NCBI GenBank assembly: GCA_000320545.1
Contig: ADNK01001571.1
Coordinates: 1-34,227, forward strand
Direction of reading: 5' to 3'
Source: Bigelowiella natans CCMP2755
Lineage: Eukaryota; Protista; Cercozoa
DNA: 34,227 nucleotides
Shown here: piece by piece, positions 8,150 through 23,522 of the stretch
How the letters are laid out: the number at the start of each line of letters is the position of its first letter
Numbering within the stretch: the first letter of the stretch is position 1
Made by a program: the position numbers and the translations under genes
The notes under the pieces: generated by a model
Databases searched by the model: none
Told to the model about the DNA's origin: nothing
The model's input: only the letters and a program-made list of their open reading frames with translations

Positions 8150-9270
8150 GGAAGTAGTTCTCCGATGTATGTGCGCGCAAGTTGCCAGCTACAACAGTGA
8201 GACAATGCAGACAATCATTTTTTGTTTCGCCACAATCTGCTGCGATGCGTGGCGTCATGGAATGATAGACATCAAATGTGTTGTGCACGCATGCGCGTGA
8301 TCGACGCATGCAAGGAGCACGTGCGCGCTGAAATGTGATGTGCAAATTGATCCTTAGGCACGACAGTCCATTAATTCAAGCACAAGTGAACTTTATTGTG
8401 TTGTGGTGCGATGTTCAAGGCACTCCACTACGCATCACCCACAGCAATCAAAGGTGTCAGCTTCGATCACGCACAGTTCCAGAGTTGTGCGCATCATCAA
8501 GAAAAGTTGTGCTAGTCATTTGACATGGTCGATGCTGTCTCTGATGAGACGTGTTCACTTTTTCCACCATTGCAAGTGTGCGCATTGCAAATGGACAGCA
8601 ACTTCAAAAGTGCTCTCAAGTGCACCCAATTTTCCTGTGGTTGCAGTCAACATGAAACGTGTGCCAAACGCACAGCACCCAACAAAAGTCAATTCGCAGG
8701 TGTGTCCATGATGTCTTGTTTTTCGCATTGCACAGGAAAGTGCTCGAGTGATTCCTTCAAATCACCTTTCAGCACAGATTCTCAAACTGTTCACTTGAGA
8801 TTTGGCAAGAACTCTTTGAACGCAGCAATCACAACATCGACCCCACCGCTGTCATCTCTCCTTCGAGTGCTCATCGACTCGCAATCGCCGCGGAGAGCAC
8901 CTAGACGTGTTCTTCCTCTTGACATGACAAAGATTCCACGTCGTGGATCATTGCCAGAACCACGTCTGTGACACCAACCCATCAGGAAACACCATCTGCT
9001 CTGTCCCTTCTGGCCTTCTAGCCTTCCTACCTCGCACCGACGACACAAAGGTGTGTGGCATTCGCAATTGTTGATTCAACAAGGGAAAAGGCTCAGGTCG
9101 AAAACAAAGGCGACGGCGCCGGTGACGTGAGATCTCAGCCTGCATTTTGGTGTCATTGGGATTGACACCGTGTCATTTTGATTTTCAATGGTGTTCATTC
9201 CGGCAATTGCCCGTGATCTTGAAGCACATGACGCCCTCTCTCATGACATGCAGAATCGCGATTGGGAAGA
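8150..9270. other. TpA-depleted eroded block B
   Basis: No TA seen between about 8521-8900 or about 9035-9290. The few survivors elsewhere are mostly in CTA/TAG context. Confidence 0.85.
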
Positions 9271-9290
9271 AAACCAAGGCCATTTTCATC
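8948..9290 (-). pseudogene. Possible eroded gene remnant within block B
   Basis: ORFs 9185-9505 and 8948-9145 are in the same frame, separated by two TGA codons. The frame includes a signal-peptide-like MKMALVFFPIAILHVM. Excess His/Cys/Met with no Tyr fits TA>TG/CA change. Confidence 0.3.
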
Positions 9291-9543
9291 CCTACGTCAT
9301 GAAACACCATCAACAACACAGGCCCTTTTTTATCAATATCCGGTACTACCGCTACTCGTAGTCTCGCAGGGATTCGAACGGGTGGAAAAACCAACCACGA
9401 GAACCCGTTAACGAACGACCGACAGGTAACCCAGGTCCCCCCCCCCCTCAGACGCATCTCTGTCACTTCCACCCGAAGACGCAAAGGATCATTCCGAAAT
9501 AGCAACGGATGTTTTAAGGTAGGATTCTGAAAATCTCGGTTGG

Positions 9544-10218
9544 ATGGTCATACTAAATTGCAAATGCATATACAGGATGCCATCTTCGTTCCCTTACCTT
9601 GAAAAAAGCAGAAAGTATGGCTCTATCCCTCAGAACTTAATAGATTCAACTGGAACGGCGCCAGTGCGGGAATGTTCGTCTGAATGGCCTCAATTGTCTT
9701 CTCGTCGGGCAAAATGGCTTTTATGTACAAGCCTGATTTCTATAACGTTGTTGATAGTTGCTGGTACATGTTATTCTCCAAGAAGATTGTCGAAGTCACA
9801 TAGTGTGGAAACCGATGAAGATTCTTCCCAATCATATCATCATTCGCATTTCTATCATTCAAATGCTCCAAAAAACTTTACAATGACATCAGATGAGATA
9901 AATAATTCTAAAGCGATCCCATCCATTTCTTATTCGACTGGCAACGAAGTCGGTTTAAGCGGTGCAACTCCCATCACCACCACCGCACGCAAAGCTCTTA
10001 ACCCTACTAAAAAGTTTGATCCAGTAGAGACTGAAGTTAAAATGGAAGTGGAAGGTATTTCGAAAAGTAGAATAGGTAAAACACCACCTTCGCCGATAAT
10101 CTCGAATGCCGATCCTGACACCGAAGCAAAGCTGACTAAGAAATTCTACGAAAGTCAGGCCCCATGTCGAGTCAGACAGCAATTAGTGAATCAAGATGAT
10201 GCGCAAGCATCACTGTGA
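9544..10218 (+). CDS. Type-II membrane protein N-terminal part (one TM segment plus S/T/P-rich stem); 3' part probably pseudogenised
   Basis: 224-aa ORF with basic residues before the hydrophobic WLLCTSLISITLLIVAGTCY segment, then a low-complexity stem. It ends where TpA-eroded block C begins. Confidence 0.5.
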   Translation: MVILNCKCIYRMPSSFPYLEKSRKYGSIPQNLIDSTGTAPVRECSSEWPQLSSRRAKWLLCTSLISITLLIVAGTCYSPRRLSKSHSVETDEDSSQSYHHSHFYHSNAPKNFTMTSDEINNSKAIPSISYSTGNEVGLSGATPITTTARKALNPTKKFDPVETEVKMEVEGISKSRIGKTPPSPIISNADPDTEAKLTKKFYESQAPCRVRQQLVNQDDAQASL

Positions 10219-10720
10219 ATTTGTCTAGTAGTCACCCATGCATGTGGGTCGCATTGTTAAGTGCACTTGTTTCATTTGGTTGTAAAGCTTTCAACAAAAA
10301 TGCGGGCAACCTTTCATGACTGCTGATGACAACAAGGCAATTCTGTCGCCAATGCCACTAAATCCAGAAATGCATGGATGAAATTTTCAACAACGTGCTG
10401 ACATTGCTTGGATCATGCGGTTGATGTCCAAGCTAGACTAGTAGAATTTCATTCCATCTAGCACAACCATGTGCAAAACATCAAGGAGACAAACATTCTA
10501 GCATTGCGCTAGCTCTGACATCATTTCTGCGCCAGCACGTCGAGTCCAGGAGCTGTGCGAATCAATCAGCTGAAGTTTTGCACGCATGAGAAAAACACCA
10601 CAAAGGATTCAGTCGCAGTGAACACATGCGCTGCGCGCACTGCACACGACTGGCTTGCATGACAAAGCTTCGATTCACAGCAAACTTGAAGCAAATCTCT
10701 TGTGAGTCTGAAGCCAGTGA
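10200..10720. other. TpA-depleted eroded block C, left part (interrupted by the retrotransposon)
   Basis: TA is rare and mostly in CTAG (ctagactagtag, catctagc, ttctagc, cgctagc). Confidence 0.8.
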
Positions 10721-11046
10721 TGTAGCGCGTACCACTACGCGGGCACAAGTCACGTGCGACAACAAAGGGGTTGTCGCGGATATAGAATATAGATAACGTA
10801 GATATTAATACAGCATAGGCACGTGGGTTCCGGCGGGACTCATGGCAGCACACCGGAAGTGTGCTGCCCCACGTGCGGCGGCATTCGCGAAAGCTTCGCG
10901 AATGATTACGCAGTGCACGATTTAATAAAAATATAATCTTTAATAAAAATAAACACAACTCTTCAAAAGGAAGCAAACGTGCCTTTCCCCCCCCCTGCCT
11001 ACTTGTGCACGTAGCGCCTCGGCCTGTGAACACCTTACGCGCAACA
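10721..11046 (+). repeat. 5' LTR (326 bp)
   Basis: tgtagcgcgta...tacgcgcaaca with a 10/11 terminal inverted repeat. Contains TATA-like tatagaatata and AATAAA signals. Identical by eye to 16110-16435. Confidence 0.97.
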
Positions 11047-11051
11047 ACCTT

Positions 11052-11069
11052 TGGCTTCCACACACGGGA
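11052..11069 (+). promoter_or_regulatory. Primer-binding site (tRNA-Glu/Asp-like 3' end)
   Basis: tggcttccacacacggga, 5 nt after the LTR. The reverse complement tcccgtgtgtggaagcca ends in CCA and resembles eukaryotic tRNA-Glu 3' ends. Confidence 0.75.
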
Positions 11070-11085
11070 AACGATTTGACTAACA

Positions 11086-12972
11086 ATGTCACAGCAGCTA
11101 GAAGAACAGCAGGACTTTGGCTCGCAGGCCGTGCAAGGGCACGAGCAGAAACAGGAAAGGAAGGGCGATACGGACGCTAAGGAAGGAGGAGGAACACCTC
11201 CACAGGCACCGCCGGGACCAGCACCCGGGATTAAGAAAGCAGATGCAGCAGCAGAGGCACTGGAGAACTTCTACGAGGCGGACGACGAGGACGTGGCCGC
11301 CGAAAGCAAGAAGGTCGTAATGGCATTACGAGCCTTGCGACCCAGGGCGAGCAACTACGCCAAACTGAAAGTATCGATAGAATACAAGTATCAGACACAT
11401 GATGTTTGGGCAGCTATCATGCAGGACATCATGGATTACGAAGCAGACTTACCTCCAGAGTGGGCAGCTTTGTTTAGGAACGACGGGGGTCTGGGCGCCT
11501 CGCGGGGGACGACCCAGAGCACCGTCAAGCAGCAGCAGCCGGTACAGCGGAACACCCAGTTCATGTCTGTTAAAACAGCACCGGTTATGATAACGAAATA
11601 CAACGGGAAAAGAGGTGAGGCAAGGAGGTGGTGGAAGAACGCTAGGAGTATACTCTGCGACTTTACCCCTAACCCCACCGAAAACGACAAGCTCAAATGG
11701 CTAGCTATAATAAAGCAAGCCATGGACCTTTACGAGACAGGCAGGACCCGGATCAGGCAGCTAGAGAAAATACACACTACAGTTAGTGGGCTACGAGACG
11801 TTGAGGCGATAATGAAGGCTTTTGTAAATGAACAGGATGCTAACTCCCTACCCCAGGCTATTAGAAAATACAGAGCAATGATGCAGCATGAGAGAGAACC
11901 TGTTAGAGACTTTGCCACGCGCTTCCAGGATATGATCGACGAACTACATGATTTTAATTACAACACAGGTGATGATCAGGCAAGGTTTGAAGAGTTCAAG
12001 TTAAAGATAAAGGAATCCACTTACGTTACGGAGAAAGGCTACACCACGATGGAGGCAGCAGTGCAGGCTATATCCCTACGCGAGCAGGAGCAGGACCGCA
12101 AGTTTACCAGCCCTAAGGTACCTGGCATAGGAAACATTAACGCTATTAAGCCGCAGCGAGACTGGTACAAGGACAGGGAAGGTAACCGACGTTGCGGATA
12201 CTGCTCACGTAAAGGGAAACACACCGCTAAAGACTGCAGAGACAGGAAAGAAGGACGACCCAGGATGACGATCAGGCAGCTCAACGAACACTACGAGAAG
12301 TTAAAGAGAAAGAAAGGCAGAGGACAAGGATATAACAACAGCAAATGGCAAGGCAGCAACAACGGGAAGAACAATAAATATAAGAACAAAAAGCAGAACA
12401 GTATCAATGCTATACAGCAGCAGATAAACGGAATATTAGATCACCTTAAGCAGGCGCCGACGAAGACAGCAGTACCAGCAACGCAGGACCAAGACAAGCC
12501 CATGACCCTAGACGACATAAAGAACTTAGGAGTATGCAACATTAATGACGAAGACGCTAACAGGACTATCAAAGTTGCTATGACCAAGGTTAAAGTTAAA
12601 GACAGCTACGGAGACTACAAGAAACTACCTGCCCTTTGGGATAGTGGCAGCATGCCGAAGTCCTTCATAAGCCTAAGCACAGTAAGAAGGTTAGGACTAT
12701 TGGATCAAGTGACTAAGAAAGAACGTAAATATGCTCAAGCAGACGGAAGCTCTTCCATGAAGACCGTCGGTGAGCTAATGCTAAAGCTACAGATACCTGG
12801 CAGCGACGCGGAGACCCAAATCAAGACCCGAGTAGCCATGACTTTATCCATGGAACTACTCCTCGGACAGGATGCCCTAGAAAAATTAGGGGGGATCATA
12901 TCATTCTACAATCACAAGATATACTTTGCTAAGTTGCCAAAGAAGTCAGCAGGACCATCAGCCAGAACATGA
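11086..12972 (+). CDS. gag: Gag-protease polyprotein (capsid-like region, zinc knuckle, retropepsin)
   Basis: 628 aa. Contains YNGK...RWW and MQHEREPVRDFATRF (retrotransposon gag motifs), the knuckle CGYCSRKGKHTAKDC, and protease ALWDSGS...LLLGQDAL. Confidence 0.93.
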   Translation: MSQQLEEQQDFGSQAVQGHEQKQERKGDTDAKEGGGTPPQAPPGPAPGIKKADAAAEALENFYEADDEDVAAESKKVVMALRALRPRASNYAKLKVSIEYKYQTHDVWAAIMQDIMDYEADLPPEWAALFRNDGGLGASRGTTQSTVKQQQPVQRNTQFMSVKTAPVMITKYNGKRGEARRWWKNARSILCDFTPNPTENDKLKWLAIIKQAMDLYETGRTRIRQLEKIHTTVSGLRDVEAIMKAFVNEQDANSLPQAIRKYRAMMQHEREPVRDFATRFQDMIDELHDFNYNTGDDQARFEEFKLKIKESTYVTEKGYTTMEAAVQAISLREQEQDRKFTSPKVPGIGNINAIKPQRDWYKDREGNRRCGYCSRKGKHTAKDCRDRKEGRPRMTIRQLNEHYEKLKRKKGRGQGYNNSKWQGSNNGKNNKYKNKKQNSINAIQQQINGILDHLKQAPTKTAVPATQDQDKPMTLDDIKNLGVCNINDEDANRTIKVAMTKVKVKDSYGDYKKLPALWDSGSMPKSFISLSTVRRLGLLDQVTKKERKYAQADGSSSMKTVGELMLKLQIPGSDAETQIKTRVAMTLSMELLLGQDALEKLGGIISFYNHKIYFAKLPKKSAGPSART

Positions 12973-15900
12973 TACGGCTTGACGAGTGGACCTCTGAGTC
13001 AAGCGTTAATGCGTTAGAGTTTATGGACCTAGCGGACAACAAGCTACCTACACCTACCGAGCTACGGAAGAAGAACCCCGGCAAGACCATCCGACAGATA
13101 ACGGAGCTACTGGACAAGACCCCCCCAGCTGATGATTGGGATATCGACAAAGGCAAAAAGTACATTAATAAAATATTAAACGAGAAGTACTCTGACATCA
13201 CCAAGCCGACGACGAAGCCCTCCAGCAAGCTTACCCCAGTAAAGATCGAGCTAAAGAAGGGATACGAAGAGTGCATCATCAATGACCCAGAACATAGGCG
13301 ACCGGAAGCGGACTGGGAAAAGATAGAGTGGCAGATCAATGAATGGGCAAAGGAAGGGAAGATAGAGCCAAGCAACTCACCATGGAACGTGAGACATGTG
13401 CTAGCTAAGAAACCTACTTACCCTTTCTTCCGCCTGGCGCACAACTTCATCCGCCACAACCGAGTAATAAAGAGGATCCAGACACCTACACCAAGGATAG
13501 ATGACGTTATTGAACACGTCATAGGATACAAATACTACTCTTCCCTAGATAAAAATGAATCATACATGCAGACACCCATCCACAAAACCTCCCGCCCCAT
13601 TACCGCGTTCTCCAGCAGGCACAGGAAGTGGCACTTCGTCGTATTCCCTTACGGCCTAAGCATATCAGGGGATGCGTTCAGTAGTCAGAACTACAGGGCA
13701 TACACACATGATGGGATGGCGTCTGTGTTGTGGGTGTTTGTGTTTGTGTATGTGGATGATGACATAATATGTACCAACACAGTCGTCGCTCAGATCTTCC
13801 TCCTGGAAAATATATTTATTAGGTTTGCACACTTCGGTTTTACTATTAGACTGCAGAAGTGTACATTCCTAGCTACAAGAATCAAGTGGTGTGGATATTA
13901 CCTGGAGCAAGGCCGCATCACCCCAAACCCCGAGAAAGTAGCAGCACTACAGCAAGCCCCTAAACCTAAGAATGCAAAGGAGTTAAAGTCATTCTTGCAG
14001 ACTGCAGCTTGGATACTACGTAGGTTCTCCCCTACCTACGCTAGGACTGCAGCTGCTTTTACTACTGCTTACCGGAAGGAGAACTCTGTAGGCCTCAGCT
14101 TCGCTAAGGTGTGGGCCAAGGCTGGCCTTGATGCCCACTTCGATAACCTAATAAAGTTATGCAGCAACACCCTATTGAATGCTAAGCTAGACACTACTAG
14201 ACCAGCTACCCTATGGACAGACTGGTCTAAGCTAGGTATGGCTGCTGTACTTACCCAAGACCAGCAGATCATACGGGTGTGGGGCAGGGCCTGCACAGCA
14301 GCTGAGGCCAAGTACAGCCCTACAAAAGGAGAGTATAAAGCCATGACTGAGGCGCAGAGGAAACTAAGATACTACCTGCTGTCGGTGCCCAGCTTCACCT
14401 TAATGACTGACCACAAGCCCCTCCTAGGCATCGACCGCAAGCTCGAAGCGCCTAACGATGAGTATGCAGCTATGAGGGCGGACACGGAAGAGTTTAGGGA
14501 CAAGAGGACAGTGGTCTACGCACCAGGAGACAAGCAGCTTGCTGACTATTTCAGCAGGCTGTTCGAAAAGAAAGTCCCTACCCAGGTCACCCCTATGGTT
14601 AACGCGATTACCTTCGAGGACGGCGACTTCCTGCCTGAGCCAGAGGAGCTCCAGCACCTTCAAGAACACCTGGATAAATACAAACACAAGCATGAGGTAC
14701 TTAGTGATAGGATATATGTATACACTAATAATGTTAGGCGTACCTACGTGCCACGGCGGACCAGGGGAGCCCTTCTCTTTACCGCCCATGGACCTGCACA
14801 CGTAGGAGAAAACCATATCACTGCTCTACTCTACCATTACTACTGGCCCTACAAGCTAAAAGAGATAAGGACATACCTGCGTGGCTGCAGGTGCTCCAGC
14901 TTGAAGGCGGCAGGCGTCGCCACCAAGGAGTCCAGCAAGAGCCGTGCATCTAAGAAAATCAAAGCAAGGAACTTCTTAGATATCGTGCAAATTGATGTTT
15001 ATAAGTACGATGGCTATCACTACCTTACCTTCGTTGATGTGGCCACTGGAAAGTGCTGGGTTAAAAAGATTATCAAGGTCAACGTTGCTAAGAAGAACAA
15101 AGGCTTATATAAGCAGAGGCTTACTAACTGCTACCGTACCTGGGAGTCTGAGCTCCAGGCTATCCCTGATGAAGTTAGCATAAACAAGATACCAAAGAAG
15201 TTACATGTGGATAATGAGACCTCTCTTCTACAGCTACCACACCCTAATATTGATGCCTCACCTGTATACTATGCCCAGTCCAACTCCAAGGTAGAGCGAC
15301 TCCACCGCACCTTGGCCAACCTAAGCAGGATAAATAGCACCACACCAGACAAGATACAAGGGTTAGTAAACGACACCTTCACGTCTGGGGGAGGTATCAA
15401 GGATAAGGAGAGGGAAGAAGGCGACGACAACGACGACGATACCGAGAGCGAAGACGAGAAGGTCCCGTACGATGGCCGAGTTCTAAAGGAAGGACAGTAT
15501 GTTAGGGCCAAGGTAAATCTGAGATCGAGAAATAAACAAGACCCCTTCTGGGGTGGCGTTGCAAAGGTTACCGAGAGGAAGGGGAGGAAGCAGTACTACA
15601 TCTATGATGGGAACAGGGTCACCTTGCGCCACATCAGTCACCTAAAGAATTATGATATCGGTGAGAAGCTCCTAGAGGATGTTAAAGTAAACCCTACTGT
15701 GTGGGAGCGAGCAATGCCTTGTTTAGGACCCCGACCTAAGTTCGATGTGGAATATGGAAACAATAAGGTCAGGGTGAACGACGATTGGCGCATGAAGATT
15801 GTCTATCTAGGCTACCCTGGATTACGAAATATGGAGAGGGTAGCTATGAAAATAAAGGACGGAAAATATCAGCTACTCTACCTAGCTGTTCCCGACTTAC

Positions 15901-16058
15901 CCTTTGAGCACTGGTATAAGGTCCTGGGGGACCTTGATGCAGAGGGCTGGTATGGACACGAACCTAAGGACGAAGGTGAGTTCTGGGTAAGCGACAAAGG
16001 AGATAAGGTTAGAGAGGAATCTATTACCTGGTGGTTGGTGAAGTTCCGAAAGCGATGA
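12969..16058 (+). CDS. pol: Pol polyprotein: RT, RNase H, integrase, GPY/F-like module and C-terminal Dam-like extension
   Basis: 1029 aa. Motifs: IEPSNSPW, SLDKNESYMQ, PYGL, YVDD (RT); TDWSKLGMAAVLTQ, YSPTKGE, TDHKPL (RNase H); H-x3-H...CRC, QIDV, HVDNE, SNSKVERLH (IN); DPFWGG. Confidence 0.95.
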   Translation: MIRLDEWTSESSVNALEFMDLADNKLPTPTELRKKNPGKTIRQITELLDKTPPADDWDIDKGKKYINKILNEKYSDITKPTTKPSSKLTPVKIELKKGYEECIINDPEHRRPEADWEKIEWQINEWAKEGKIEPSNSPWNVRHVLAKKPTYPFFRLAHNFIRHNRVIKRIQTPTPRIDDVIEHVIGYKYYSSLDKNESYMQTPIHKTSRPITAFSSRHRKWHFVVFPYGLSISGDAFSSQNYRAYTHDGMASVLWVFVFVYVDDDIICTNTVVAQIFLLENIFIRFAHFGFTIRLQKCTFLATRIKWCGYYLEQGRITPNPEKVAALQQAPKPKNAKELKSFLQTAAWILRRFSPTYARTAAAFTTAYRKENSVGLSFAKVWAKAGLDAHFDNLIKLCSNTLLNAKLDTTRPATLWTDWSKLGMAAVLTQDQQIIRVWGRACTAAEAKYSPTKGEYKAMTEAQRKLRYYLLSVPSFTLMTDHKPLLGIDRKLEAPNDEYAAMRADTEEFRDKRTVVYAPGDKQLADYFSRLFEKKVPTQVTPMVNAITFEDGDFLPEPEELQHLQEHLDKYKHKHEVLSDRIYVYTNNVRRTYVPRRTRGALLFTAHGPAHVGENHITALLYHYYWPYKLKEIRTYLRGCRCSSLKAAGVATKESSKSRASKKIKARNFLDIVQIDVYKYDGYHYLTFVDVATGKCWVKKIIKVNVAKKNKGLYKQRLTNCYRTWESELQAIPDEVSINKIPKKLHVDNETSLLQLPHPNIDASPVYYAQSNSKVERLHRTLANLSRINSTTPDKIQGLVNDTFTSGGGIKDKEREEGDDNDDDTESEDEKVPYDGRVLKEGQYVRAKVNLRSRNKQDPFWGGVAKVTERKGRKQYYIYDGNRVTLRHISHLKNYDIGEKLLEDVKVNPTVWERAMPCLGPRPKFDVEYGNNKVRVNDDWRMKIVYLGYPGLRNMERVAMKIKDGKYQLLYLAVPDLPFEHWYKVLGDLDAEGWYGHEPKDEGEFWVSDKGDKVREESITWWLVKFRKR

Positions 16059-16100
16059 AGGTCTAAGGGAATAAGGAAGGAAGGAAGGAGCAACGTGACT

Positions 16101-16109
16101 TGGGGGAGG
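16101..16109 (+). promoter_or_regulatory. Polypurine tract
   Basis: tgggggagg immediately 5' of the 3' LTR, preceded by the purine run aagggaataaggaaggaaggaaggag. Confidence 0.85.
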
Positions 16110-16435
16110 TGTAGCGCGTACCACTACGCGGGCACAAGTCACGTGCGACAACAAAGGGGTTGTCGCGGATATAGAATATAGATAACGTAGATATTAATAC
16201 AGCATAGGCACGTGGGTTCCGGCGGGACTCATGGCAGCACACCGGAAGTGTGCTGCCCCACGTGCGGCGGCATTCGCGAAAGCTTCGCGAATGATTACGC
16301 AGTGCACGATTTAATAAAAATATAATCTTTAATAAAAATAAACACAACTCTTCAAAAGGAAGCAAACGTGCCTTTCCCCCCCCCTGCCTACTTGTGCACG
16401 TAGCGCCTCGGCCTGTGAACACCTTACGCGCAACA
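16110..16435 (+). repeat. 3' LTR (326 bp)
   Basis: Direct copy of 10721-11046, followed by the TSD gtga. Confidence 0.97.
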
Positions 16436-16439
16436 GTGA

Positions 16440-16900
16440 GTCAAGGATGTGAAGCTCTTGCAAAGTGACCAACAGCACAGCACGATGAGTTCGTGTTGCA
16501 CGCACTCACAAGCAAGGAGACAAAAGACGTCACTCGTGCTTGTCAGCAGCCATGAGCCAGTGAATGTGTGAGTGGACGAAGCAATTTCAATTCTTGAATC
16601 GAACCTTCCACTTCGTGAGAATTCCGGTGTGCAGATTTGCAGAACTTCGCATTGTTGGAACAAGGGAAATCCCATGAGTTTGCGACTGCATGAGCAGTGT
16701 GCAGCACAAATGATAAACACTGTTGGCTTTGGGTTGAAAAAGCCTCAGAAGGAAATCATGTTATTGTCGCATTCACAAAATAGCATGCATTCATCCATCA
16801 CACACAATAACTTATTTACGACGACAGGCCTGATTACGATCGATGATGATGAACACTAAGTGTGTGCGCACTACCGACACAACTCTTGACTGCACAGCGA
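16440..16900. other. TpA-depleted eroded block C, right part
   Basis: No TA seen from 16440 to about 16710. TA returns gradually by about 16900. Confidence 0.75.
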
Positions 16901-17102
16901 TCTAACCCAAGTTGGCTACCACAACGCAAAGCAACTCACAAAATAGGAGGCAGGTGATAATGAGACACCTATTCATCTGCATAATGAAGTCAAACATATT
17001 TTTCATAGGAGTCTAATTCTGTAGATCAAACGAAAGTAGCATGCGGAGCGGCGTCAGTAAACAATAACCCATGTTTGTAACATTGTCAGCACAAACGTCA
17101 AG

Positions 17103-19562
17103 ATGGATCTTTCTCCAAGAAGTGGGATGGAGATAGATTCGCTTTCTGCCGCTGTGAATTCCAATCGTTCTAACAACTCCCGTCTAAGCTCCACCGCATC
17201 TTTTAGAACTGATCGTCCCCATCATCAAGTACCATTGTTTCGATTCTCAGAGGATGGAAGTTCCCATAATCGCGGCGGGCTGGGGTCTGATATCTTATTG
17301 AGCCCTCACACCCCGGCTTCTTCCAACTCTCATGATGCCTGGCCTTCTTTTAAAGACCCCGATAAGTTGCATAGGTTTTCATCTCTGACAGGATCAAGTG
17401 GAAGAAATAGTCATGTCATAGACTCCCAAAAACTTTTTGGGTCGATGAGACGTGGAGAGAGCAAGTTTGGAAATAATTCATCAAACTCAGGAACTCCTAC
17501 CACTACCTCGATAAATAAGAATAAAGTAACACTAAATTCCATACCTAGATATAGTCCTCGAGCTACCACTGCTTCTCCTACGCAAAAAGTCCAGATTAGA
17601 GACTCAAATGGCCCGAACAGTATCGCTGTTAGTGAGGGCTCACAAACTGGTGGTGGGAGATTTCACCTACGTAACAATGGAAATTTACAACAACAATCGA
17701 CTAGTAATGGCTTTTTAGAGGCCTCAGTGGCAGCAACAGGTTCTAATTCAGTGATGACCACCGAGGATCCGACCTATCCCCCTTCATCTCCTCCTCCTTC
17801 ATCTCCTCCTCCTTCATCTCCTCCTCCTTCATCTCCTCCTCCTTTGTCTCCTCCTCCTTCATCCCCTGCTCCTCATCCAAGGTCCCAGGGCTGTTTTTCT
17901 AGTATTTCAAGAGCGTTGAAAGGATTAGTTCCTAAACCGCGACTAAGAGTAGCAGTAAGGTTGAACTACCGACCCGTTATTCGAAACCCACATCCCCCTA
18001 CAAGAAGTGCCCTCCCTCCTCCCACCCCTCGTGCCTCCCACCACAGAGATACTCACTGGGCCACCACAAATATAGGCACAGAATCTGGAAACAAGACAGA
18101 AACCTTGATGTTGAGCAATAATAAGCCAGAAATAGAGGACAATATACCAGATAAATTTAAAGATCCTTCTGAAATTCACAGGTTGCTGGTACGCAACAAA
18201 AGCAAGAGGCATCCTTATTCTAGAGATACTACCTGCGATATTGCTATTGGTGCTGAAGAAATAAAGCATGGAACGAGCTCCAACAGGGATAGTGTAAAAA
18301 CAGTAAATACTGAAACCCTAAGACAATCGAATCCACAACAAATGAACAGTGGAGGGCTACGGGCCTTTGCAGGCGCAACAAACAACTGCACCTATAAACA
18401 TGAGGAAAACAGGTTATTGAGGAAAAGCCATCTCCCTGAGGAAAAGAACACTCTGGTCTCAAAGAAACAATATAGCTATCAAAACTTTGATCAGGTCAAG
18501 TCTCCCCGAATCGAAGATAGACGTGTTGGAAACTCATCTTTCCACGGTGCGCAATTCCAACCAGGTGTTCATGGTGGGAATGATGGTGGCGGACAAACTA
18601 AACATCGTATAGTTCAAGACAATGGAATGGCTCAGAGAGAAATGCGTGCCAACAGGAATTTTCGTGATGTTTCAGTGCCAGTCTTCCAGGATATGCAACA
18701 GCAATTTTATTCTAAATCCACGAACGGAAATCCAAATATAGTGAACTCAGACTTACGCCTTCCACATGAGAGAGCTTCTGAATTCCGACCCTCATCAAGA
18801 ATTACCTCACAGAATTCTTTCTCTAAAAATCCTCGGCGACATTCCATTTCTCATCCAATGATGTTGGCCGGAGGAGTCGAGGCTAAATTTGATGCACGTT
18901 CTAAAAGACAAGGTCAAATATCGACCCCTTTTCCAACTTTTCAGTCCCAGCCTATGCAGAGAAGCGTAAGTAATTTGAAGCAGTCAGACTGGAGAGCACC
19001 ACAAAATCATTTTATGGCCCAAGCACCAGTAATCATTAAACAGCCACGGCAGCAATTCGTAATACGGCGGATGTCTAGAGCTCATTCCATGGAAAATCCA
19101 AAAAACAGTGCTTACCTAATGCAAGCGGGCAAAATTTCTCATATGGGGGGTAATTTTAGCCAGACACAGCGTCGGGGGGTAGTTGGGGGGATTTTGTGTG
19201 CAGTTGAAACAAAGATGATGATACCTAGCGACATCACTTACAAAGGAAAAAAGTACATTGGTCCAACCCTTGGCAATCGTCCCACGTACAAATCGAAACA
19301 AACTTGGCGATATTCAATCTATCCACATGGTGTTTCTGAACAGAATGGTAAATTAAGGGTTCAAATAAAACGTAAGGGACTAAATCCAACATACCCTCCT
19401 TATCCAAACACGATAGAAGGACTTTTAGAAGCGGCATATTTTCGAGATCAAGAGACGTTTAAACTTTGGAGGGCTGGAATCCTGGTCAGAAAACCAAAGT
19501 TTAACTTTGAACACAATAGCGGTGGAGGCAAATCTTCCTTCAGCCCAATTGCTTGCAAATAA
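17103..19562 (+). CDS. Intronless 819-aa low-complexity protein with C-terminal AP2-like DNA-binding domain (putative transcription factor)
   Basis: S/N/P-rich disordered body. The C-terminal YPHGVSEQNGKLRVQIKRKG...NTIEGLLEAAYFRD...KPKFNF matches the AP2/ERF pattern (Y.GV...GKw.aqI...T.eeAA.ayD...lNF). Confidence 0.7.
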   Translation: MDLSPRSGMEIDSLSAAVNSNRSNNSRLSSTASFRTDRPHHQVPLFRFSEDGSSHNRGGLGSDILLSPHTPASSNSHDAWPSFKDPDKLHRFSSLTGSSGRNSHVIDSQKLFGSMRRGESKFGNNSSNSGTPTTTSINKNKVTLNSIPRYSPRATTASPTQKVQIRDSNGPNSIAVSEGSQTGGGRFHLRNNGNLQQQSTSNGFLEASVAATGSNSVMTTEDPTYPPSSPPPSSPPPSSPPPSSPPPLSPPPSSPAPHPRSQGCFSSISRALKGLVPKPRLRVAVRLNYRPVIRNPHPPTRSALPPPTPRASHHRDTHWATTNIGTESGNKTETLMLSNNKPEIEDNIPDKFKDPSEIHRLLVRNKSKRHPYSRDTTCDIAIGAEEIKHGTSSNRDSVKTVNTETLRQSNPQQMNSGGLRAFAGATNNCTYKHEENRLLRKSHLPEEKNTLVSKKQYSYQNFDQVKSPRIEDRRVGNSSFHGAQFQPGVHGGNDGGGQTKHRIVQDNGMAQREMRANRNFRDVSVPVFQDMQQQFYSKSTNGNPNIVNSDLRLPHERASEFRPSSRITSQNSFSKNPRRHSISHPMMLAGGVEAKFDARSKRQGQISTPFPTFQSQPMQRSVSNLKQSDWRAPQNHFMAQAPVIIKQPRQQFVIRRMSRAHSMENPKNSAYLMQAGKISHMGGNFSQTQRRGVVGGILCAVETKMMIPSDITYKGKKYIGPTLGNRPTYKSKQTWRYSIYPHGVSEQNGKLRVQIKRKGLNPTYPPYPNTIEGLLEAAYFRDQETFKLWRAGILVRKPKFNFEHNSGGGKSSFSPIACK
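17780..17878 (+). repeat. 15-bp coding tandem repeat (tcatctcctcctcct, encoding SSPPP, about 5-6 copies)
   Basis: Seen directly; translates as PPSSPPPSSPPPSSPPPSSPPPLSPPPSSP. Confidence 0.9.
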
Positions 19563-20010
19563 TTTGTACTTATGCACATTATGTCAAAAAGTTATAGTAC
19601 AAAACTCGCTCACAGATCCAACGTAAAGTCAAGATGATCGGCGTGCGAGGCAATTTCATTTGCAATGCGATGCACGATGCAGCATGGGACGACCGAGTGC
19701 CGTCGCAATATGTCATCATCGTTACATTCAGACATTGCTTGATTGTGCACCTCATCGATGCGCGAACGCACTCAACTGGTCAGTCGCATTCATTCATCTA
19801 GTTGTGTCGTCTTGGCCGTTCTAGTGTTGGTAGCGAGATCGACATGCACATCATTTGTCCTAGCTAGGCTGGTGATGTCGCTCGCGCGCGCTTTTTCCAG
19901 AGTTAGACCTGCTAGCCTGGCTAGCTGGAGGCGTCCATGCTAGCTAGCTAGCTAGGCTAGCTAGCATGCTAGCATGTGTCGGCGCACGTTGATGATGCGC
20001 GACGCTCCAG

Positions 20011-20113
20011 CTAGCCAGCGCTGTGGAACAAACCACAACAAACATCTAGGCTGGACGTGCTAGCCAGCGCTGTGGAACAAACCACAACAAACATCTAGGC
20101 TGGACGTGCTAGC
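20011..20113 (+). repeat. Perfect 49-bp tandem duplication
   Basis: ctagccagcgctgtggaacaaaccacaacaaacatctaggctggacgtg occurs twice. Confidence 0.9.
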
Positions 20114-21182
20114 ATGGCTCTGCGCTCATTTCTAGATTTGTGTTTTCTGTCAGCTAGTCACTTCTAGGGTTCCAGCGTTGGCTAGTTGGTGATGGCTCTC
20201 TTGCACCAAAGTTCCAGAGTTCTGGAGTTGTGCGATGGCGCGACGACAAGCCATTCCAGCATTCTAGATTTTTGCACATCATCTGCGGACCATGCACATT
20301 GCTAGCTAGCTAGATGCACTGCTAGACTGGCACACTTGCTAGGTGAGAGCTAGAGAGTGATGCCACCCACCAACTGCTAGCTGACGCGATGCAGCGCAGA
20401 CCCAGAGCTAGAGAGTGCCGGGCCCACAACTCCAGAACTGCTGTCAAGTCTCTAGGCCTGCACATGCCAGCATGCTGTCATGGGTGAGTCACAACAATGG
20501 TTGCAAGGCAATGTCTAGAATGTGTGTGCGTGCAGCCGACAAGATGCCAGACTTCATTTGCGCCTGCCTAGCCGCGTGCGCAGCTACAGACTAGCTAGCT
20601 GCCAACTGTGGCTAGCAAGACTCACCTAGCTAGCTAGATGGAGACATGTTCGTGACTGCAGTGCATGACGAGGGCATTTCAGCCATCATGCCATGCAGCG
20701 CACCATGCTAGCCACTGTGGAGGCCATGCGATCGGGCCAGCCTAGCCCAGATGGTGGCTAGCGGGGCAGCTAGCTGTGGCGCAGCTCCTTGCAGGCGCCA
20801 CCATCGCAGCACGCAGCAACGATGTCAGCATGCATGTCAACTTCTCTCTCAACACGCAATGCATGGCAGCAATGTCTCGATTGTCGTGCAGCGTGGAGCG
20901 CGGCAGCGATGCAGCAACGACAACAGCGAAAGCGAAGGAGCATCGAGAAGCGCAAGCCAAGGCGCACACGGCAACACAAGTCGCACCGGAGCGCACGTGC
21001 ACAAAGAGTGCGCTTTTTTCCGAGCAGCACCCAGGGCAGAAAGTTCCAGAACTTTCCTTCGACTGGCAACCAGTGCCCAGGGTGAGCTCTGGAGTTGAGT
21101 TCTGCGCATGCGCTCCCTTTGTGCGCTCCCAGTTTGCTCTCATCACTTCGCCACCCGCACACAACACTTCGAGGCCTCGAGA

Positions 21183-21372
21183 AACAGAACTCAAAATCCC
21201 AATTGACAAGACAGAACTCAAAGTCCCAATTGACAAAACAGAACTCAAAATCCCAACAGACAGAAGACTTCAAGCAACAAAGAAAGAACAAAAACCCCAA
21301 ACCACAAAAGTCCCAAAACCACAGAAAACCAAACAAAAGCAAAGAAAACCAAACAAAAGCAAAGAAAACCAA
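21183..21372 (+). repeat. A-rich tandem repeats: 27-bp unit about 3 copies and 20-bp unit 2 copies
   Basis: acagaactcaaa(a/g)tcccaattgacaa about 3 times; aaaaccaaacaaaagcaaag twice. Confidence 0.8.
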
Positions 21373-22372
21373 AAAAGGACCGAGAGACTGACGATGACAA
21401 AAGTTGACAACAACAGCAGACCAACCCTCGAGAACAACAAAGACAAACAACCGACAAGCACGACACCAGCAGAGACACTCCAAGAAGTGGTCACACAGCC
21501 CACTCCACGAGCAAGGCCCACGCACGACGTCGGCGACGAGGCACACCGACACTCAGACACATCGCCCCAACAAGCTTGCACTTCAGTGCCACCCGTTCAG
21601 AAGCACGCAGCCTGCCTTGACCACGAGATCAAGGACGATGGCCCGGCTGCGGCCGTTTTGCATGCGAACGGTTTCAACGACGCGCTGCATCACTGTGCCA
21701 TGCCTGTGGCCGCAGAGCCGCCAAAAGTTTTTCCAATGAACACTCGCATGCCAACGCCTCCCATCAAAAGTGACAGTGATGATGCAACACCGCGCAGCGC
21801 GACATGGCTAGCTCGATCACTCATTCGGTCAAATGAGTCCGCATCATGTTGTTAGATTGCCAGTGAACTCCGCACTGCTGTGCTGTGCTCGCTGCAATTG
21901 ATGTTTGAGTAGATCTGTGGTGCAAGCTAGCTAGACTAGTTGAGATAGACACATGCCATAGCACATGCATGCAGCAACACAATTCTAGAATTGCGCTCTC
22001 GCATTAAATCCCAGAATTATCCAGCCCTGCTACACTGCGCTTCAACACAACACAGCGATTGGTTTTCGCAGAAACTACCAGGAACGCCACTACGGTCTGC
22101 ATGCCACTTCAGCATTGGCTCGAACAAACAGCAGTGACATGACAGCTCTACAGCCTCAACGCACGTGTATTTGAGCCACCAGGCTTACGAGCTTTCGCAG
22201 CTAAGCGCATGTCTAGATGTATGGCTACTCGTGATTTACGTAAACGTCACACGAGAAATTATTCCCAGAGGGAACCTACTACTACTACTACTTTCTGGTT
22301 TAAGTATAACATCTACTGCCAACGACAAGGTGTGTCGAAGAGTTAAATGTTGATCAATCAAAGCTTCAGAGT

Positions 22373-23522
22373 CTAGAAGAGTTTATCTGCAACAGGAACT
22401 CCGGTCTTTGCTTCTTCAGCGAGCACGCCCAATGCAGCGAGCATAGCAAGTCGTCCGTTATTGAGCTCCTGGTTCTTCCTTTTCTCAGCAGCATCAGCAT
22501 TCTTGGGCATCAAGCCAAGGGGGTCGAACCCATAGTTTCCACCTTCCTTGCCATCCTTCAACTGAACAAAAAATTATTTTTCAAAAATAAGATAATAATA
22601 CTTAGATATTGATTTCATAAATGAATTACTGCTCCGATAGCTGCGTGCCATTTTGGAAGACCCTCCTTATCGAAGAAAGTGCTGCTTCGAACCAATTCTT
22701 GAATGACAGCTTGAGCTAGGGCGATTTTTACGATAGACTGAGATACATTAATGTTTGTTATGATCTATAATCCTGAAATTATTAACTAAATTACCGGGTT
22801 CTCAGCAAGAACGTGTTTGTACTGCTGCCAAGCGGTGCCAGCAGCATCAGCGTTAAAAGGATGGAACTTCTCAGCGAGGATCTGTCCAACGACAGCCATC
22901 ATACCGAGGCGACCGTGTTGGAGCTCAGCATCACGATACCTACGACGAGCTAATTGTAAGAGAGCTACCAAATAGCGGGTGCTCAAAAATGATTGTTCGG
23001 CTCTTTTGATACTACTTCAAACAATCGTATCTAATACCTGTTGATCACAGCCTTATCAACATCACGGGAAAGTCCGGCTGGATCCCATCCTTGAGGCTTT
23101 TGGAAGATGATATTGTCGTAAACTTTGCCAGACCTACGATGAATCTAGGTGGTTAGACCGACGATTTACCAAGTACCATGACCTAACTACTCGTCATGTT
23201 TTCTTCTATGTAATAACTCAAACTCACATCTTGTCAAGCTCGTTCCATCCAACGTATCCAGACTTAGCACCGACGTTGCGCTTCAATCCACGAGGAGCCG
23301 CCCTGACCATTGACCTCAGGCCAGTCTTAGGAGCAGTGGTTCGCGCTGCAGGGGCAGCGGAAACGAGTCCAAGTAATGCAACACTGAGATACTAAAGAGC
23401 AAATGCTTGTTAATCGATGATTTCAATTCATTTACACTACATAACTTCTATGCTCCTTCTCCACCGGTAAGCGCTCCCACCATCTTCTACTTCTTTCAGA
23501 TATATAGGAAAAATACCAGCAT
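22373..23522 (-). CDS. Light-harvesting chlorophyll-binding protein, LHCX/LI818(LHCSR)-like, 6 exons, bipartite plastid-targeting leader
   Basis: Exons 23522-23517, 23391-23228, 23133-23038, 22939-22795, 22737-22630 and 22561-22373 splice in frame. Product: MLYLSVALLGLVSAAPAARTT...GWDPAGLS...RYRDAELQHGRLGMMAVVGQILAEKFHP...GGNYGFDPLGL...QELNNGRLAMLAALG. Confidence 0.93.

Follow-up and report, generated by a model that had tools for sequence, protein, structure and literature searches.

TpA-depleted intergenic islands of Bigelowiella natans as probable long-lived targets of both mutation and insertion

Introduction

The nuclear DNA of Bigelowiella natans contains stretches in which TpA is depleted and CpA and TpG are gained on both strands. 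The stretches described here are probably persistent intergenic islands that are mutated and also receive insertions repeatedly, repeats per se not being the target. The window, meaning the whole stretch of 34,227 nucleotides analysed (contig ADNK01001571.1 of assembly GCA_000320545.1, strain CCMP2755, forward strand), holds several such islands, one of which encloses a kilobase with no TA at all.

TpA hypermutation in this species was described by Mettrop, Krasovec et al. using mutation-accumulation lines (bioRxiv 10.64898/2026.01.13.699255). Two integrated viral regions, one a giant-virus insert of 186 kb and the other a virophage region of 25 kb, were reported to have a mutation rate of about 6e-7 per site per generation, where the rest of the genome has 3.5e-10; all changes toward GC in these hypermutable regions fell on TpA and produced TpG or CpA. 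The lines were clonal, the hypermutation was present in some of them only, a subset of the de novo mutations was confirmed by Sanger sequencing, and the principal target was a single-copy viral insert. The same authors delineated 124 clusters, each of 3 kb or more, of windows poor in TpA and rich in CpA and TpG, found transposon domains to be enriched in TpA-depleted coding sequences, and put forward an ADAT2-like candidate, Bn78255, on prediction only. Ongoing hypermutation was limited to the two viral regions and was not seen in islands like the present ones; flanks, LTRs, retrotransposons, and CTAG receive no mention in the main text of that preprint.

The direction of change had been read correctly from the letters of the window by a first-pass annotation. 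The region-limited, strand-symmetric conversion of TpA to TpG or CpA which it proposed is the one measured experimentally in the preprint, and its description of the mutator as undescribed has therefore been overtaken. Remarkable as it is that a eukaryote should convert A:T to G:C at a single dinucleotide within selected regions, such a process has already been reported with direct experiment. The window bears instead on the question that the preprint left open, namely the choice of target: the most successful young retroelement encountered here escapes and short single-copy spacers are saturated, a pattern that speaks against homology sensing and makes a simple reading as defence against foreign DNA less convincing. 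The resemblance to the published hypermutation is close (same species, TpA to TpG or CpA on both strands, localised domains, windows poor in TpA and rich in CpA and TpG, and transposon-derived sequence, here a solo LTR, among the depleted DNA). Unlike the viral regions of the preprint, the targets here are intergenic islands of about 1-2 kb that are largely single-copy, and unlike its account the commonest young retroelement is spared. What is added to the preprint is a solo-LTR family that spread in a TA-free state, a quantified sparing of gypsy elements beside eroded flanks, and the erosion of CTAG scars.

TpA-poor blocks in the window

A TA stands at 20771 and no other occurs before 21809; this gap of 1038 compares with 389 for the runner-up in the whole window. 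Composition predicts about 46 TA for this kilobase, and the minimum across 2000 shuffles was 31. The absence of TA from 20772 to 21808 that the first-pass annotation had noticed was thus confirmed, as was the lack of tyrosine in the 359-aa frame lying there, which is a consequence of the loss of TAA, TAG, TAT, and TAC. Ordinary CpG deamination had been discounted at the same time, and rightly so, CpG retaining a rho of 0.93 within the TA-free kilobase. Four other blocks are depleted, as judged by TA counts, and are set out below; no strand is assigned to them.

175-960: eroded island (10 TA, 48 expected)
8150-9290: eroded island, mostly single-copy, with a low-copy repeat fragment at about 8950-9200 (12 TA, 76 expected)
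10219-10720: eroded single-copy flank to the left of the young gypsy element, with two CTAG scars (11 TA, 37 expected)
16436-16760: eroded single-copy flank to the right of the young gypsy element, matched by independent reads (1 TA, 22 expected)

In each of the four, TG and CA are in surplus by about as much as TA falls short, in agreement with the excess claimed earlier. The recurrence of the signature likewise stood for all four, except that the right-hand block, given as reaching 16900, is depleted only to about 16760. The stretch 19620-20773 could not be retained as part of a TA-poor block in the plain sense: its rho is 0.82 and it carries 50 TA, 44 of them within CTAG. Neighbouring genes do keep TA, as had been remarked, the open reading frames at 17103-19562 and 9577-10218 having normal TA content. 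The footprint is symmetric and has sharp limits at genes; the flank 10219-10720 starts at the stop codon of the second of these genes.

9577-10218, plus strand: intact host gene of 213 aa with normal TA content, at the locus of JGI Bigna1 model 136782

The 213-aa gene has a 99% identical complete open reading frame in an MMETSP transcriptome, and its identity with the locus of the JGI model places the window in B. natans. The JGI model is longer at its upstream end (9290-9576), where it reaches the margin of the 8150-9290 island, and it splices out an intron; the MMETSP frames match the uninterrupted 213-aa frame, and the model may be wrong.

The single-copy parts are identical, with zero differing letters, in contigs from three independent DNA runs, which span 16412-17810, 17815-20039 (18061-20039 in one run), 20084-20803 (to 20720 in one run), and 21776-22300. 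The exact agreement of three runs means that the TA-poor single-copy parts are not an assembly artefact. Few TA remain in them, so no difference between the reference and the three later runs was to be expected, and none was found. The interior of the old LTR is represented by short collapsed multi-copy contigs only, the base-by-base confirmation applying to the single-copy parts alone. An assembly or polishing artefact, which could appeal to the fact that no single independent contig spans that interior, is refuted for the single-copy parts by these runs and is of negligible probability overall, the process having been caught in the form of new mutations, a subset of which was Sanger-confirmed (bioRxiv 10.64898/2026.01.13.699255).

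Alignment of homologous repeats placed TA opposite TG 17 times, CA 16 times, and anything else 4 times, which makes 33 of 37 differences for TG and CA together, in pairs that are not fully independent; the direction from TA to TG or CA in these pairs is taken from the preprint.

The TA-free kilobase as a solo LTR

The TA-free kilobase is a repeat, a solo LTR at 20775-21804, and not unique DNA.

20775-21804, plus strand: solo LTR of an older family, 1030 bp, TGT...ACA, with no TA and no CTAG scar, recognised from copies elsewhere
20771-20774, plus strand: left copy of a probable 4-bp target-site duplication (TSD), TAGC, inside CTAG, assigned from the sequence and from the family's 4-bp TSDs at two other sites
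21805-21808, plus strand: right copy of the probable TSD, TGGC, assigned from the sequence

Five long copies at other loci are 77-91% identical and have a common start base and, where complete, a common end base. Two of these sister copies are solo with perfect 4-bp TSDs; in two others a polypurine tract immediately precedes the LTR and the element extends into internal DNA that is also TA-free. All copies of the old LTR lack TA, apart from one TA inside an insert. Had each copy been eroded separately from an ancestor with TA, any two copies should disagree, CA against TG, at about half of the former TA sites, which predicts tens of CA/TG swaps per pair. Sister copies were found to differ by 0-3 such swaps (1-3 in full-length pairs) against 111-139 shared CA or TG per full-length pair, so that separate erosion was rejected and most of the TA loss is older than the spread of the copies. 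The family was thus already essentially free of TA when its copies spread, having presumably either been eroded first and then mobilised or been natively TA-poor, and no TA-bearing copy was found. Among double changes between copies CA/TG is nevertheless the most frequent (22 pairwise counts), an indication that a handful of TA sites persisted and were resolved afterwards. The first-pass annotation had regarded equally TA-poor homologues as evidence against a mutational process. The copies of the 1-kb block are indeed equally TA-poor, and this speaks for erosion of the family before its spread, the process existing all the same. The TSD pair TAGC/TGGC is suggestive of one TA to TG change after insertion; it is a single site in CTAG-rich DNA and could be chance.

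The 359-aa frame was rejected as a gene since it has no Pfam match, overlies the repeat, and shows almost no RNA. No superfamily could be assigned to the old LTR, 1.5 kb of adjacent internal DNA giving no Pfam match and no match to the young pol. At 20846, 21113, and 21480, inside the old LTR, the window has C and all independent contigs have T; the reference may be in error there, the strains may differ, or copies may have been collapsed. Another repeat family free of TA (L009, L010, and L011) is 91-95% identical over 0.6-1 kb with 1-2 CA/TG swaps; it has more than 15 copies, and about 110-140 bp of it are held in common with the old LTR, at 21552-21692.

The focal spacer and its CTAG scars

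The solo LTR sits within an island bounded by two genes.

17103-19562, plus strand: 819-aa open reading frame, function unassigned, normal TA content, forming the left boundary of the island
19624-20774, no strand assigned: left part of the eroded island, with nearly no TA outside CTAG
21805-22000, no strand assigned: right part of the eroded island, fading toward the 3' end of the light-harvesting gene, with one scar at 21981
22214-22561, minus strand: last exon and 3' UTR of a light-harvesting (chlorophyll a/b-binding) gene (PF00504, E 9e-13)

The two genes converge, and the island is therefore a tail-to-tail spacer. RNA reads lie at 19350-19745, over the 3' end of the 819-aa frame, and poly-T loose ends place the poly(A) site of the light-harvesting gene near 22214. 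The 819-aa frame has no Pfam match; its C-terminal 100 residues (19350-19562), apparently ordered and basic and likewise without a Pfam match, are reminiscent of an AP2-type DNA-binding module.

The left part of the island contains nine intact 8-bp scars, each made up of CTAG following and preceding a 4-bp repeat, and five eroded scars in which the core reads CCAG or CTGG, two of them nested at 20210-20229. A 49-bp tandem duplication lies at 20010-20113. In the focal block an exact direct repeat surrounds CTAG at k=4 in 14 of 49 cases, four of the 14 being in CTAG runs, and flanking repeats at k=2, 3, 5, or 6 were not found there. Pooled over eroded DNA, an exact 4-bp repeat surrounds 65 of 240 CTAG and 40 of 293 CCAG or CTGG, compared with 1.1% for other cores. 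The density to the left of the old LTR amounts to 7.8 intact and 4.4 eroded scars per kb, with none found in the old LTR, in the young element, or in 21 kb of genic DNA.

Many of the surviving CTAGs are thus 8-bp insertion scars which are themselves eroding, to CCAG or CTGG in either direction. CTAG as a context immune to the mutator was considered and rejected on its 2.4-fold enrichment, for which protection alone is insufficient, on the restriction of the repeats to k=4, and on the erosion to CCAG and CTGG. CTAG is being added and is not immune, and a slower rate before G may operate as well. The presence of scars to the left of the LTR and their absence from it suggest that the island is older than the landing of the LTR.

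A young Ty3/gypsy element between eroded flanks

10721-16435, plus strand: young Ty3/gypsy LTR retrotransposon, TSD GTGA, 397 TA, uneroded
10721-11046 and 16110-16435, plus strand: identical 326-bp LTRs
11086-12972, plus strand: gag-protease open reading frame
12969-16058, plus strand: open reading frame for reverse transcriptase (RT), RNase H, and an integrase placed by position only, with no Pfam match

Membership in gypsy follows from the paired LTRs, the TSD, profile matches to protease, then RT, then RNase H, and an integrase region downstream; no chromodomain match was obtained. The family comprises roughly 330 near-identical insertions, its young copies differing at 33 of 68,730 positions, and provides a test set for ordering mutation and insertion. 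Among 49 copies of the 5.7-kb family, TG or CA has replaced TA at 4 of 4623 sites. When six TA sites of the LTR were left free to vary in a genome-wide pattern search, 664 LTRs matched, 658 exactly and 6 with a TA change.

The gag-protease and pol frames overlap by four bases (12969-12972), the start lying within the stop, and a 5-base gap, longer than usual, separates the 5' LTR from a primer-binding-like motif starting TGG (11047-11065). The C-terminal extension of pol (15600-16058) has no PHROGs or Pfam match. The end of the LTR (16380-16435) is covered about 770-fold on the minus strand in a 2026 RNA run, in reads pooled from all copies; 1311 reads continue into the sequence after the 5' LTR and end after about 19 letters. 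Antisense RNA is one possible source; the other is minus-strand strong-stop cDNA primed by a tRNA, a sign of active reverse transcription.

The surroundings of young elements were sampled as 49 flanks, with 11 usable TSD pairs, drawn from low-numbered contigs. The observed/expected ratio of TA across the 49 flanks is 0.26-0.29 in the 150 bp nearest the LTR and climbs with distance, reaching 0.80 at 1.25-1.5 kb, a gradient that is present on both sides of the LTR with TG and CA up equally, by which strand-coordinated editing at a break was rejected. A rho of 0.43 or less was found over the first 500 bp in 34 of 49 flanks and over 1 kb in 17 of 47, the latter against a baseline of 5% of 1-kb windows under the cut-off of the preprint (p 5e-11, paired flanks not being independent). 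Depleted segments were counted in 23/38 near positions and 6/38 far ones (p 1e-5). Left and right halo lengths are correlated over 12 insertions (Spearman 0.66, p 0.02); three insertions are one-sided and lie where a long saturated block ends, eroded DNA covering at least 1.5 kb to one side but just 230-350 bp to the opposite one, and some young insertions have no halo. Old solo LTRs have depleted flanks as well.

Both flanks in this window are single-copy, and several others are themselves repeats; a Pfam scan of 130 flank open reading frames returned three clear host-gene matches. Scars occur in these flanks at 1.56 intact and 0.96 eroded per kb. Young TSDs containing TG or CA are concordant on both sides. 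Two pairs are mismatched, TGTT/CGTT (L037/L036, G000:C249) and GTCA/CACA (L034/L033, G000:C265), neither being a simple TA to TG or CA change. Two young elements lie about 300 bp apart in different copies of one older repeat (L052/L053, G000:C159; L077, G000:C452), and six TA of one copy of that repeat are TG or CA in the other.

Order of mutation and insertion

The arrangement is best explained by long-lived islands. The blocks would be the accumulated footprint of the B. natans hypermutator, which the mutation-accumulation lines of the preprint showed to turn TpA into TpG or CpA, an A to G change on one strand or the other, and which would be directed to discrete non-transcribed domains, RNA being near-absent from the focal block and presumably so from the others. 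These domains would correspond in this window to intergenic islands of 0.8-2.4 kb that persist for long periods. The islands may first collect 8-bp CTAG scars, some of which have since eroded, and would then receive LTR elements, namely the old TA-free solo LTR and the young intact gypsy. The focal kilobase is TA-free mainly because its family was already so when it spread, and the young gypsy family would have been spared, most simply, through late arrival. A chromatin mark or domain might recruit the mutator, with the same sites gathering scars and LTR insertions. The surrounding eroded DNA is mostly single-copy; a foreign origin applies to the solo LTR, as judged from sequence. That the islands came first and the elements second is likely, an order suggested by the scars: flanks with intact and eroded scars beside an element with none have undergone two successive events which the element has not. 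The repeats among the flanks, the insertions at the ends of saturated blocks, those with no halo, and the concordant TSDs point the same way. A search for an empty-site allele in another strain found none. Counting against long-lived islands are the correlation of left and right halos, which flank-directed mutation also predicts, the chance that the old LTR is natively TA-poor, no TA-bearing copy having been found, and the restriction of ongoing hypermutation to two viral regions in the preprint.

The concentration of gypsy elements in one type of non-genic site and the C-terminal extension of the integrase recall the chromoviruses and other targeted Ty3/gypsy elements. Unlike chromoviruses, the young element gave no chromodomain match, and both targeting and survival could operate in a gene-dense genome; the enrichment in islands may in part reflect survival of insertions outside genes.

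The alternative is that an LTR insertion triggers TpA erosion of the adjoining host DNA, the element itself being protected. It would account directly for the smooth gradient of TA outward from the LTR in the 49 flanks, for the near-far difference (23/38 against 6/38) and the two-sided correlation of halos, and for the depleted flanks of old solo LTRs and the TAGC/TGGC pair. The timing is also compatible, erosion by 75% taking about 1e5 generations and the divergence of copies permitting a few 1e5, as roughly estimated from the preprint rates. [quoted passage not shown] The likeness lies in the mutation of non-repetitive DNA beside repeats; unlike the B. natans process, DIM-2-dependent RIP changes C to T via a cytosine methyltransferase. 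Insertion-triggered erosion is nonetheless unlikely: some insertions have no halo and others are strongly one-sided, the eroded scars in the flanks would require two events that both skipped the element, mismatches of the TA type number 0 of 11 young TSD pairs where about 2 were estimated (a weak contrast), and islands with no young element are present in this window. The fuller proposal, in which each insertion provokes erosion over about 0.3-1 kb on each side and shields itself, making an A to G counterpart of DIM-2-type RIP from which the parasite has escaped, is equally doubtful. A milder version is likelier, in which one chromatin mark would both recruit the mutator and guide the gypsy integrase, and the older LTR family would have become immune after losing all its TpA and stayed mobile. 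Mutation of the flanks after insertion, in the DIM-2 manner, is on the whole less likely, the TSD and scar evidence favouring islands first.

A true reversal of RIP, with repeat homology as trigger and repeats as target, is very improbable; the first-pass annotation had proposed repeats or dead genes as the target, and a targeting of repeats in the manner of RIP is not supported. TA is wholly absent from the old LTR family, internal sequence included, and transposon domains are enriched among TpA-depleted coding sequences in the preprint, as this reading would have it. Against it, 4 of 4623 TA sites are changed in 49 young copies and 6 of 664 LTRs carry a change, eroded single-copy intergenic DNA lies immediately beside this almost untouched repeat, and the main target in the preprint is a single-copy viral insert. 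As a general rule it is largely refuted. Fungal RIP in its RID-dependent form does likewise produce transitions at one dinucleotide on either strand, mostly in the neighbourhood of mobile DNA, yet it changes C to T at CpA, the direction opposite to that in B. natans, and it is homology-triggered, confined to duplications, and premeiotic. In B. natans, unlike fungal RIP, a repeat of 664 copies is untouched, the long near-identical copies of the 5.7-kb family are not mutated, and the process runs in clonal lines. The B. natans process does not belong to RIP, its chemistry being opposite and repeats as such not being its target.

Chemistry of the change

ADAR and TadA enzymes prefer a U or T on the 5' side. 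The A to G change with a 5' T/U preference resembles the activity of ADAR and TadA/ADAT enzymes, and clustered, region-limited editing is a further likeness to these and to APOBEC enzymes. ADARs, however, act on double-stranded RNA, and retroelement editing of the APOBEC type is strand-biased and falls inside the element, whereas in B. natans the gain is shared evenly by TG and CA, and the young element carries no editing. The likeliest chemistry, favoured by a modest degree, is that an enzyme of the TadA/ADAT type, directed by a chromatin mark, deaminates adenine to hypoxanthine. A plausible though less favoured alternative invokes a modified thymine at TpA (for example, an oxidised T) that mispairs with G, a modified adenine, or an error-prone polymerase. 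It concerns chemistry only and is compatible with long-lived islands. A search of the genome for TET/JBP gave no match, and its control gave none either. TA is a palindrome in which A to G on one strand is indistinguishable from T to C on the other, and the deaminase candidate of the preprint is a prediction only, both of which leave room for such chemistry; strict TpA specificity with one class of product fits a deaminase, and the TadA/ADAT fold family is represented by six loci in the genome.
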